Below, piece by piece: positions 62,555 to 63,964 of a stretch of 64,000 bases of DNA (position 1 is its first letter; every line of letters starts with the position of its first letter). The stretch is taken from positions 11,098,001-11,162,000 of the forward strand of contig CATNEN010000007.1 of the NCBI GenBank assembly GCA_950097015.1, read 5' to 3'. Under the pieces are notes generated by a model, which saw nothing but the letters and a program-made list of their open reading frames with translations, ran no database searches and was not told the DNA's origin. The translations under genes were made by a program, and so were the position numbers. This stretch comes from Macrostomum hystrix. Taxonomy: Eukaryota > Animalia > Platyhelminthes.

Positions 62555-62737
62555 ATGGCTCGTTCCCGCCAGACTGCACGCAAAGGCAAAGCCAAGAAGG
62601 GCGGCAAAAAGGGCGCCACCAAGAAGGCCTCGCCAGCCAAGAATGCGAAGGCCACGAAGGCCGCGGCTAAGCAGGCCAAGGGAGCCGCCAAGCAGGCCGT
62701 TGCTGACACCGGAGCCCAGGCCGCCGAGAGCAAGTGA
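62555..62737 (+). CDS. 60-aa basic microprotein: histone H3 N-tail mimic (ARSRQTARK) fused to an H1-like K/A-rich tail
   Basis: GC3-rich ORF (AAG/GCC codons) in AT-rich flanks. Upstream acceptor CTTGCAG at 62531-62537. Start context GCAATGGC is identical to that of the neighbouring H3 gene. Confidence 0.7.
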   Translation: MARSRQTARKGKAKKGGKKGATKKASPAKNAKATKAAAKQAKGAAKQAVADTGAQAAESK

Positions 62738-63553
62738 CGCATTGGTGTGACCGATACGCTCAGACCGATCTCGCTGACTGTTCGCTGTTGTGCTTGCGTC
62801 CCCGACTGCACTTAGCCATACCGTCCTGTACTGGGCGCTTTTTATTAAGTATTCTAGCTCTTATCAAATTCTCTGCAACGAGAAATTCTTTAACGCAGAA
62901 CCTGATCAACCGTCTAATGCAGCTGCTGACTGTGGAATGCAAGTCTTTGTTTTGTTTAGACCCCGAATTCGCAGCTTTTTTATCCACATCTTTATCCACT
63001 GTTTATCTCGAGCAGCTAATAGTTTGCTGACTGTAGCCATCAGCAGAGAGTACTGTCTCGCACGTCTCATAAACTCTAAATGTCTAGTCTGTCCGTCATT
63101 TTATAAAAATCCCTCATGTAGCCATCTTTTCTCAAAACATACCCGCCGACCCGCTGTACTGCGGGTGAAATCATTCATGTTTTTCTGCAAAAATCTGTCC
63201 CACCGCCCTCATTAGCTCTTGTGAAAAATACATTTATTCTACTCTTTGAAATAGGATTCCCCAAATAAAGTTTCATCTTAACTGTTCTTTTTTTGCTGAT
63301 AAACAGTGAGTCACATCCTATAGGCCGGGTTAGTTTTGAAATGTTCTTGGATTAGCTGGGCATGACGGGAAGGCTTAACCGCCTCTTAGAAAGTCTCGCC
63401 TGAAGTCCGTGGCAATAGTAACAGAACAGAATGGCAGATTTCGTGGCTGGGAAGTAAAGGCCACATAAGAGACTTATTTTTAGCTTTAGTTTAGCTTTTG
63501 TCTGATCTTCTGACAGCGCGCAGCGTATTTTGCCACCGCCTCCCCTCAGTGCA

Positions 63554-63964
63554 ATGGCCCGCACCAAGCAGACAGCCCGCAAGTCCACTGGAGGCAAGGC
63601 GCCGCGCAAGCAGCTGGCCACCAAGGCCGCCCGCAAGTCCGCGCCCAGCACCGGCGGCGTGAAGAAGCCGCACAGGTACAGGCCCGGCACGGTGGCTCTG
63701 CGCGAAATCCGGCGCTACCAGAAGAGCACCGAGCTGCTGATCCGCAAGCTGCCCTTCCAGCGCCTGGTGCGCGAAATTGCCCAGGACTTCAAGACCGACC
63801 TGCGCTTCCAGTCTGCCGCCGTCGGTGCCCTGCAGGAGGCCAGCGAGGCCTACCTGGTCGGCCTGTTCGAGGATACGAACCTGTGCGCCATTCACGCCAA
63901 GCGAGTGACCATCATGCCCAAGGATATCCAGCTGGCCCGCCGCATCCGTGGCGAGCGCGCCTGA
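63554..63964 (+). CDS. H3.3: Histone H3, replacement (H3.3-type) variant
   Basis: Full 136-codon H3 with S31 and A87/G90 (AAVG at 87-90). Upstream acceptor CCTCCCCTCAG. Confidence 0.97.

Follow-up and report, generated by a model that had tools for sequence, protein, structure and literature searches.

The window, a 64,000-nt stretch of a Macrostomum hystrix contig, carries close to its end a short lysine/alanine-rich gene, here called P1, and a co-oriented, intronless histone gene of the H3.3 type whose ATG at 63554 lies 816 nt beyond the P1 stop codon (Table 1). The histone gene shows the H3.3 hallmarks S31 and A87/V89/G90 and is one of nine H3 loci in 220 Mb, five of which are H3.3-type and four canonical-type. 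The sequence GCAATGGC surrounds the start codons of both P1 and the H3.3 gene, as an earlier sequence-only reading of the locus had noted; among the nine H3 genes it occurs only at this copy. An acceptor-like CAG is found ahead of the H3.3 ATG (AG at 63548-63549).

Table 1. Features at the P1 locus and related P genes in the genome
Feature	Position	Strand	Basis or remark
Trans-splice acceptor gtcttgcAG	62529..62537	+	AG at 62536-62537; spliced-leader contigs
5'UTR, 17 nt	62538..62554	+	read from the sequence and the leader sequence
P1 coding sequence	62555..62737	+	gene of this window; 60 aa, K/A-rich
3'UTR	62738..63263	+	contig ends, signal hexamer
H3.3-type histone gene, intronless	63554..63964	+	136 aa; PF00125, E 1.3e-48
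P1'			inverted copy of P1; identical protein
P2	3.1 kb downstream of H3.3		paralogue
P3	456 kb away		same contig; paralogue

The P1 product contains 15 Lys, 19 Ala and 3 Arg (25% K and 32% A), which gives a pI of 11.4 and a net charge of +16. It carries the sequence SPAK at S26-K29, and close to its C-terminal end stands a GAQA motif. The GC3 of the coding sequence is 0.75, the G+C content of the 3'UTR is 0.38-0.52 in 200-nt windows, and the antisense frame of the ORF is also open over 124 aa. The ORF length, the Lys and Ala counts, the distance to H3.3 and the seven-of-nine match to the H3 N-terminus given by the sequence-only reading were all reproduced. That no histone fold is present, as it had also stated, was borne out by the Pfam search, which gave no match to P1 at E<=10 but recognized the neighboring H3.3, and by AlphaFold2, which predicted residues 1-26 to be without structure and residues 27-58 to form a single helix (mean pLDDT 67). 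Only about 50 residues follow the H3-like nonamer, and a histone fold requires about 65 or more. At the same threshold there was no Pfam match to SERF, TMA7 or ribosomal families. P1 likewise had no Pfam match to the winged-helix globular domain of linker histone H1/H5 (PF00538) or to true protamines (e.g. PF00260), and its Arg share is far below the level of about 50% or more, often with Cys in addition, that marks true protamines.

RNA contigs containing P1 were obtained from runs X9, X12 and X3, which come from two studies, and the coding sequence is identical in all three. A fourth run, X13, comes from a third study with another organism label and expresses a P1'-type copy. Contigs of X9, X12 and X3 all have their genomic 5' end at 62537, after a loose end of 24-25 nt that is identical to the 3' part of the spliced leader of Macrostomum lignano, which is 35 nt long (PMC8629364). 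The splice acceptor proposed earlier from its position before the P1 ATG is thus real and is used for leader addition in three runs; since the leader is attached, the sense strand of the RNA is fixed. The contigs are unspliced and colinear with the genome through the stop codon and into the 3'UTR for at least 455 nt, and end at 63192 (X3) or 63262-63263 (X12, X9). With the spliced leader at the acceptor and an unspliced run to 63192-63263, P1 is expressed as a complete single-exon trans-spliced mRNA rather than as part of a larger gene. An AATAAA hexamer is located at 63264-63269, past the contig ends, and the true poly(A) site therefore probably lies slightly beyond 63263. From the AUG at its own end, the leader would give rise to a mini-ORF of 4 codons that stops with the TGA at 62547-62549, out of the main frame. 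The k-mer depth of the P1 contig was high in one whole-animal run.

The possibility that the ORF is an internal exon of an H1 or other gene, which the sequence-only reading had named as a case that would overturn it, was rejected: the leader joins 17 nt before the ATG and the contigs show no joints through the stop and the 3'UTR. Lack of transcription, named in the same way, is contradicted by the contigs. Reads were compared over 59900-63540, with the H3.3 coding sequence and the tandem repeats on either side left out. A mature bicistronic P1-H3.3 RNA, or use of an alternative acceptor, was considered and rejected, as none of the contigs reaches from one gene into the other and the depth at 63316-63540 was zero in all four runs. 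Of the co-expression with H3.3 by trans-splicing or alternative acceptor use that had been suggested, trans-splicing of P1 has proved real and a mature RNA joined to H3.3 has not been found. A primary transcript of the operon type, common to P1 and H3.3, may exist; the gap between the two genes is about 290 nt, against an operon criterion of 1 kb (PMC8629364).

The M. hystrix genome was searched for P genes by protein, profile and DNA pattern. Four P loci were found, all on one contig (Table 1); a reversed control pattern gave 0 matches. The proteins are 56-60 aa long with pI values of 11.4-12.0, net charges of +16 to +22 and only 2-5 hydrophobic residues each. In their alignment 19 columns are invariant; the contexts of the start and stop codons are conserved, as is the C-terminal GAQA motif. 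A longer start context, CAGCAATGGCT, is common to all P-family genes, and the P1 context CGCC(T)GACAGCAATGGCT is common to P3. In composition the paralogues range from Lys/Ala-rich to Arg/Ser/Lys-rich, with Arg shares of 5% in P1, 12.5% in P2 and 19% in P3, and Lys and Arg are exchanged through AAG/AGG codons. Such K-to-R shifts are known in protamine-like lineages.

Coding sequences of the paralogues are 62-64% identical at the nucleotide level, whereas the UTRs do not align; the P1 3'UTR gave no alignment with those of P2 and P3 and no convincing conserved 3'UTR element was found. Pairwise dN/dS values of 0.36-0.63 show, from the sequence comparison, that the P-family coding sequence is under constraint. 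The unit duplicated in P1 and P1' has its 5' limit at 62529 and includes the 3'UTR as far as 63017, with 98.6% identity; there is 1 synonymous change in the 183-nt coding sequence and there are 6 changes in 280 nt of UTR. The copy from organism E (contig depth 3.9) differs at three positions, all non-synonymous (G17S, T34S, T52S), an observation that counts against the explanation preferred below.

Public databases gave no relatives. Besides Pfam, the family alignment was run against 5.8 billion clusters in a word-indexed search, which produced 352 candidates, none at E<=0.01, and a full HMMER profile search of 1.84 billion representative proteins produced 0 at E<=0.001. Exact-sequence look-up of P1, P2 and P3 showed them to be absent from the collection, and 598 pattern matches in JGI metagenome contigs yielded no confirmed case. 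The ESM Atlas returned weak bacterial look-alikes only (0.76-0.85): the top three clusters are unnamed bacterial hypothetical proteins (0.83-0.85), and the nearest Pfam-named clusters (0.76-0.78) are bacterial Lys/Ala-rich histone-like proteins of the Hc2 type (PF07382). The scores are within the shuffled-sequence range given by the tool. The Hc2-type proteins are compositional look-alikes, from which P1 differs by having no Pfam match, an animal host and a trans-spliced mRNA. As judged by these searches the P genes are an orphan family without detected relatives in the databases covered, in keeping with the earlier failure to recognize a described family. ORFs this short often go uncalled, and the family is missing from protein databases. 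In the searchable literature on flatworm and planarian protamines and sperm nuclear basic proteins we found no description of a flatworm sperm or chromatin polycation.

The P proteins are small, highly basic and non-globular, as protamine-like proteins are. With protamine-like sperm proteins such as bivalve PL-IV they share a size of about 6 kDa, extreme basicity, a Lys/Ala/Ser/Arg composition, the lack of a globular domain, and a multi-copy, fast-diverging character with K-to-R shifts, but there is no sequence homology, and no H1 relationship of the P family is detectable. Bivalve PL proteins derive from H1-type precursors. P1 is also like the DNA-neutralizing C-terminal domain of H1 and the stand-alone, tail-only H1 of kinetoplastids in its AK-richness, SPxK site and predicted helix-prone or disordered character; it differs from linker histone H1 in having no winged helix and, with 60 aa, in being much shorter. 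The likeness to a Lys/Ala tail with S/TPxK sites, an H1-type feature represented by SPAK in P1 and SPSK in P3, is compositional only. Four ordinary H1 genes are present on other contigs of the genome, and the P family is therefore an additional polycation and not the sole linker histone. With only 5% Arg, P1 is unlike true protamines, which counts against the explanation preferred below.

The explanation that we prefer, with about even confidence, is that P1 is a genuine single-exon Macrostomum gene whose product is a chromatin- or DNA-neutralizing polycation belonging to a family of four paralogues. The stand-alone, expressed and strongly basic small protein postulated by the sequence-only reading is supported by the spliced-leader contigs and the pI; a nuclear location, DNA binding and any role in sperm are what we infer. 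The pre-mRNA receives the spliced leader of the genus at AG 62536-62537, and with polyadenylation some 0.5 kb beyond the stop codon the P1 mRNA is monocistronic and about 0.75 kb long. Its translation product would be a polycation of 6 kDa, Gly/Lys-rich and unstructured in the N-terminal third and made up of helix-prone Ala/Lys sequence in the remainder. Such a protein would bind DNA or chromatin electrostatically, largely independent of sequence, and neutralize its charge, as do H1 C-terminal tails and protamine-like sperm proteins, and binding may be tuned by phosphorylation at the SPxK site present in P1 and P3. On this reading the P proteins would be chromatin- or nucleic-acid-binding polycations resembling protamines or H1 tails, with sperm chromatin condensation as the most probable setting. 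Judged by composition alone, a role with RNA, the ribosome or the nucleolus would look the same as DNA binding.

A role outside chromatin, such as that of an RNA-binding, nucleolar, ribosome-associated or cytoplasmic chaperone-like small basic protein with a size like that of SERF, TMA7 or small ribosomal proteins, would suit the size and charge of P1 equally well. Its mRNA is trans-spliced, and in M. lignano trans-spliced mRNAs are enriched among conserved and stem-cell genes (PMC8629364); the high depth in the whole-animal run points weakly the same way. We nevertheless consider this unlikely, given that the Pfam families concerned gave no match, that housekeeping proteins are widely conserved whereas no relative occurred among the 1.84 billion representative proteins, and that recent duplication with fast, composition-shifting divergence is more typical of reproductive polycations. 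It is highly improbable that P1 is transcribed and not translated, the ORF being an accident of a GC-rich non-coding RNA. GC-rich Ala/Lys codon runs do leave the antisense frame open too, and the leader AUG creates the upstream mini-ORF, but all four loci keep the frame open over 56-60 aa between homologous start and stop contexts, conservation is limited to the ORF, dN/dS is below 1, GC3 across the P genes is 0.70-0.76, similar to that of the adjoining histone gene, and the spliced leader sets the sense strand.

The N-terminus of P1 calls for separate consideration. Residues 2-10, ARSRQTARK, match the H3 sequence ARTKQTARK at seven of nine positions, with A1, R2, T6, R8 and K9 kept. Under a composition-only null the probability of at least 7/9 is about 7e-6 to 2e-5, rising to about 2e-4 with the family-invariant A and R fixed. 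A second colinear 7/9 match, of ATKAAAKQA to H3 21-29, is not significant alone, and a Smith-Waterman alignment of P1 with the whole H3 tail reached a score of 54 where shuffled sequences averaged 40.3 +/- 5.7, a marginal result (p=0.024); P2 and P3 were dissimilar. The corresponding nonamers of P2 and P3 match H3 at only 3/9 and 2/9 positions, and P3 has Ala at the K9-equivalent. From this comparison the H3-like N-terminus is peculiar to P1 and P1' and is not the basis of family function. A decoy function, as proposed by the sequence-only reading, therefore cannot explain the conservation of the family.

The literature on histone mimics shows that chromatin factors can recognize short stretches resembling H3, and internal ARKS/ARKT motifs act as H3 mimics in G9a, SETDB1, ADNP and NOP16. 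At the N-terminus, PAF15 mimics H3 and is read by the PHD finger of UHRF1. With this precedent, a free ARSRQTARK left after Met removal could engage H3-tail readers or writers, either A1-R2-reading PHD/ADD fingers or, by way of TARK, chromodomains and K9 methyltransferases, and act as a decoy or as a recruiter on coated DNA. The match starts precisely with the N-terminal residue of the Met-free protein and would rarely arise from composition, the colinear match to H3 21-29 adds to it, the first 26 residues are predicted to be unstructured as histone tails are, and neither P1' nor the contigs of any of the four runs show a change in the nonamer. As the sequences of these runs hardly differ, this constancy says little on constraint. 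We regard functional mimicry as very unlikely: selection on the family is not for a motif that P2 and P3 do not have, K4R and S10G take away two key regulatory residues and break the ARKS motif, and P1 is one ORF chosen from a very large scan, to which multiple testing applies. We have equally strong doubts about a fuller version, in which P1/P1' would be an endogenous free-standing H3-tail mimic joined to a Lys/Ala helix that coats DNA, and would have arisen in an orphan family of protamine-like type adjoining the H3.3 gene. It would present an H3(1-9)-like tail on coated DNA, unable to carry K4 methylation or S10 phosphorylation, and so might titrate or recruit A1/R2 and K9 readers and writers, for instance during the spermatid histone-to-polycation transition. 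Should the P1 N-terminus engage the H3-tail machinery, P1 would be a stand-alone protein with a natural N-terminal mimic of H3, which is rare; if not, the case advises caution, as mimicry is not established by 7/9 identity in a single paralogue when the family is of low complexity.

An origin from H3, through tandem duplication of the H3.3 5' end giving rise to the P family or to P1 alone, or through overwriting of the P1 5' end by H3 gene conversion, appears quite unlikely to us; it is compatible with any of the functional readings. P1 and P2 flank H3.3 co-oriented within 4.6 kb, in a genome with only nine H3 loci, and the nonamer and the shared GCAATGGC point in the same direction. The first 30 nt of P1, however, are identical to the nine H3 genes at 19-23 of 30 positions, with most synonymous positions different, the 300 nt upstream are without significant homology (z <= 1.2), and beyond residue 10 the likeness is mostly compositional. 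P2 and P3 have residues in common that P1 lacks (MAS.RK, GKSK), and if P1 and P2 are sisters, as the shared C-terminal AD.GAQAA hints, P1 acquired its H3-like residues secondarily. There is no H3 neighbor at P1' or P3, and comparison of the flanks of H3.3 with those of the P genes revealed no homology. The synonymous sites and flanks argue against recent H3 ancestry; the H3 5' duplication suggested earlier has nothing positive in its favor beyond adjacency and the nonamer. Recent H3 gene conversion is ruled out by the synonymous-site differences.

Transgenesis, positional RNA-seq and RNAi have been reported for Macrostomum, and the expressed four-gene family provides concrete candidates for in situ hybridization and RNAi in this genus. 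Regarding the neighboring histone gene, an Rfam search restricted to H3.3-type loci found no histone stem-loop downstream of the H3.3 gene in the window or at two further loci with three more H3.3-type genes. The Pfam PAF model, described as a histone-like domain, matches the H3 of the window with an E-value of 9.2e-05 and 23.6 bits, just above the curated cut-off of 23.4.

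The sequence-only reading had described a short open frame with a histone-like start, and this description proved accurate. The gene concerned, P1, encodes a product with 15 Lys, 19 Ala, 3 Arg and 2 acidic residues (computed pI 11.4, net charge +16). Its residues after Met, ARSRQTARK, are identical to those of H3.3 (ARTKQTARK) at 7 of 9 positions. The neighbouring H3.3 gene lies 816 nt downstream of P1 on the same strand, and the start-codon context GCAATGGC is common to both. The G+C content is 0.58-0.64 in the P1 ORF as against 0.19-0.33 in the surrounding A+T-rich spacer. Pfam gave no match for the 60-mer at E≤10 and identified the neighbouring gene as a core histone (1.3e-48). 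AlphaFold2, using a three-sequence alignment, predicted with moderate confidence (pLDDT 67, pTM 0.27) that the N-terminal 26 residues are unstructured and that residues 27-58 form a single long helix. Neither a histone fold nor a winged helix is present in the model, in agreement with the claim that P1 has no histone fold.

Contigs of four public RNA runs (X3, X9, X12 and X13) were aligned to window 59900-63540. X9, X12 and X3, from two studies, gave one contig each, beginning precisely on the G (62537) of the acceptor AG, which lies in gtcttgcAG. The 24-25 letters preceding this position in the contigs match nothing on the stretch and represent a spliced leader; this 5' extension is a perfect match to the 3' portion of the M. 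lignano leader (35 nt) printed in PMC8629364. The P1 ATG sits 17 nt past the acceptor, and the contigs are colinear with the genome, without joints, through the stop codon. They end at 63192 (X3) or 63262-63263 (X12, X9), just before an AATAAA at 63264-63269. Depth was zero in all four runs at the upstream spacer (61364-62461) and at 63316-63540, before H3.3. P1 is a complete single-exon, trans-spliced mRNA, and the trans-splicing proposed earlier is borne out by the leader joined at its acceptor in X9, X12 and X3. The leader and the jointless contigs rule out that P1 is untranscribed or an internal exon of an H1 or other gene. A 124-aa frame is open on the antisense strand; since the leader fixes the sense strand, this frame results incidentally from codons rich in GCC/AAG. 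The Macrostomum spliced leader terminates in AUG, which on the P1 mRNA would open a four-codon mini-ORF out of the main frame, with its stop TGA at 62547-62549.

Whole-genome searches by peptide, by profile and by DNA signature (GCAATGGCT, 130-155 nt, GGNGCNCAGGC) each returned the same four loci, every one on C7, the contig of the window. The reversed control pattern of the signature had zero matches genome-wide.

Positions of the P1 family and the neighbouring H3.3 gene (L003, L004 and L005 are other stretches of C7)
Gene	Position in stretch	Position on C7	Strand	Product	Remarks
P1	window 62555-62737		+	60 aa	ATG-to-TGA frame, 60 codons
P1'	in L005	C7:10954684-10954863	-	60 aa	inverted; 206 kb upstream of P1
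P2	L004:5127-5297	C7:11165127-11165297	same as H3.3	56 aa	3.1 kb past H3.3 stop, outside window
P3	L003:1495-1671	C7:11617115-11617291		58 aa	456 kb downstream
H3.3	window 63554-63964		+		

P1' is a 489-nt duplicate of window 62529-63017 with 98.6% identity; on the upstream side, the homology extends just 9 nt beyond the trans-splice junction. Six of the 7 differences fall in 280 nt of 3'UTR and one in the 183-nt CDS, and because the latter is synonymous the P1' protein is identical to P1. A contig from X13, a run with a different organism label, extends past 63017 into sequence resembling the P1' flank (28/30), and therefore P1'-type copies are also expressed; this contig (depth 3.9) has G17S, T34S, T52S and an 18-nt UTR deletion. 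The H3.3 gene is flanked by P1 on one side and P2 on the other, with an acceptor-like cccgCAG 14 nt before the P2 ATG; P3 has no histone gene nearby. P1, P2 and P3 show 48-50% pairwise identity (P2 vs P1 49%) and 19 invariant columns, including M1, A2, R5, R9, G11, K12, K14 and the C-terminal G-A-Q-A. The start context CAGCAATGGCT and the stop context TGACG are common to all three. Their coding sequences are 62-64% identical with dN/dS of 0.36-0.63, and neither the 3'UTRs nor the 300 nt upstream align. GC3 is 0.70-0.76 across the family. There is a compositional gradient in the family, P1 being rich in Lys and Ala with 3 R and P3 in Arg, Ser and Lys (11 R, 11 S, pI 12.0); many of the K/R differences are AAG/AGG codons. 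An SPxK site, like those in H1 tails, is present in P1 and in P3, which carries SPSK and GAQA. A perfect small hairpin, CCCGC-tgtact-GCGGG, occurs in the P1 3'UTR (window 63150-63165); in P3 a similar CCCGCTGTACT stretch lacks the closing arm, and the version in P1' has diverged.

Pfam, two large protein searches, an exact look-up, the ESM Atlas and a metagenome scan were empty or gave compositional matches only, as expected from the claim that P1 belongs to no described family. Conservation comparisons beyond the M. hystrix genome covered near-identical RNA runs only. These results confirm that P1 is a real, trans-spliced gene and place it in an orphan family of four genes that has not been described before.

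The genome has nine H3 genes, five H3.3-type (S31, A87/V89/G90), four of which encode an identical protein, and four canonical-type (A31, S87/V89/Q90). These diagnostic residues justify the H3.3 label of the neighbour. The other loci (C3:13777709; C5:476489, 478082; C12:191442; C34:6910984; C37:3821317; C39:3156896, 19200212) are dispersed, without a large tandem histone cluster. An Rfam scan limited to H3.3-type genes, namely the neighbouring gene and two loci with three further ones, found no 3' histone stem-loop, a result that does not bear on the distinction between the two classes.

The most likely explanation of the family is an ordinary one, a lineage-specific protamine-like or H1-tail-like polycation. 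Like such proteins, its members are 6 kDa, carry charges of +16 to +22 and are non-globular; the SPxK sites of P1 and P3 recall H1 tails, and the presence of several linked paralogues that diverge fast and drift from K to R recalls the protamine-like class. As polycations of this kind they would neutralise DNA charge, and sperm chromatin condensation, the best known role of such polycations, is the proposed setting. We consider the chances of a chromatin or nucleic-acid polycation about even, and sperm specifically a tentative, rather doubtful assignment; that the protein is made, in which tissue, and that it is nuclear and binds DNA are all inferred. Four ordinary H1 genes lie elsewhere in the genome. 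A small basic protein with a non-chromatin role is unlikely. That P1 acts as an untranslated RNA is very improbable given the shared start and stop contexts and conservation confined to a constant-length open frame, which at the sequence level is good evidence for a translated gene.

The sequence-only reading proposed an H3-tail mimic as one possibility, beside a sperm or condensing protein. By composition only, the chance of at least 7/9 matches at a fixed N-terminal position is about 7e-6 to 2e-5, or about 2e-4 once the family-invariant matches A1 and R8 are granted, and the match is unusual even allowing for scan size. P1 also adjoins one of just nine H3 loci in 220 Mb. However, the mimic rests on nine residues of one paralogue: P2 matches 3/9 and P3 2/9, with Ala at the position equivalent to K9. 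The H3-like start thus stands for P1 but not as a family-wide trait, and a functional mimic seems highly unlikely. A second 7/9 match, ATKAAAKQA vs H3 21-29, is non-significant for an Ala/Lys-rich protein. Descent from H3 is to be judged apart, as a matter of evolution, and is improbable. Local alignment of the whole tail scored 54 vs 40.3 ± 5.7 for shuffles (p = 0.024), which is marginal, and no homology was found between the P1 and H3.3 flanks. The first 30 nt of P1 are identical to the nine H3 genes at 19-23 positions; most of the matched codons differ in their third position. A recent duplication or conversion of H3 is thereby excluded as the source, and with it the suggested birth from an H3 5' duplication as a recent event. 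At positions 3, 6 and 13, P2 and P3 have the same residue and P1 another. The AD.GAQAA C-terminus common to P1 and P2 and their proximity suggest sisterhood; if so, judging from three short sequences, R2 and Q5 of P1 would be derived. The nonamer could be an ancient remnant, could have converged under selection or could be due to chance.

In the four runs, none of the contigs over 59900-63540 connects P1 with H3.3, and therefore the proposed alternative acceptor use between them is unsupported. An acceptor-like ccTCAG/tgca (63544-63553; AG 63548-63549) lies 4 nt before the H3.3 ATG, its CAG about 290 nt from the P1 3' end. PMC8629364 classes neighbouring trans-spliced genes <1 kb apart as operonic, and an operon-type shared precursor is possible. 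Were an AUG-ended leader added at this site, a long ORF in a frame other than that of H3 would begin there, an odd arrangement; either the site would be unused or its leader AUG bypassed.

Some 5.7 kb ahead of the P1 acceptor, the nearest upstream gene probably ends with a C-terminal exon (56567-56815, +) of coiled-coil, septin-like character. The A+T-rich spacer at 59900-61320 contains dispersed repeat fragments, matched by many short contigs (90-99% identity, loose ends on both sides, variable indels), probably of a transposon-derived family. A 261-bp x 2 tandem repeat occupies 59322-59846, and Mariner/Tc1-like transposase fragments occur in two frames at 52880-53631. The long short-tandem-repeat arrays (2644-5215, 11990-14052, 15498-16865, 43842-45267, 55243-56478) have several frames without stops over hundreds of codons, ORFs of mechanical origin and not genes.
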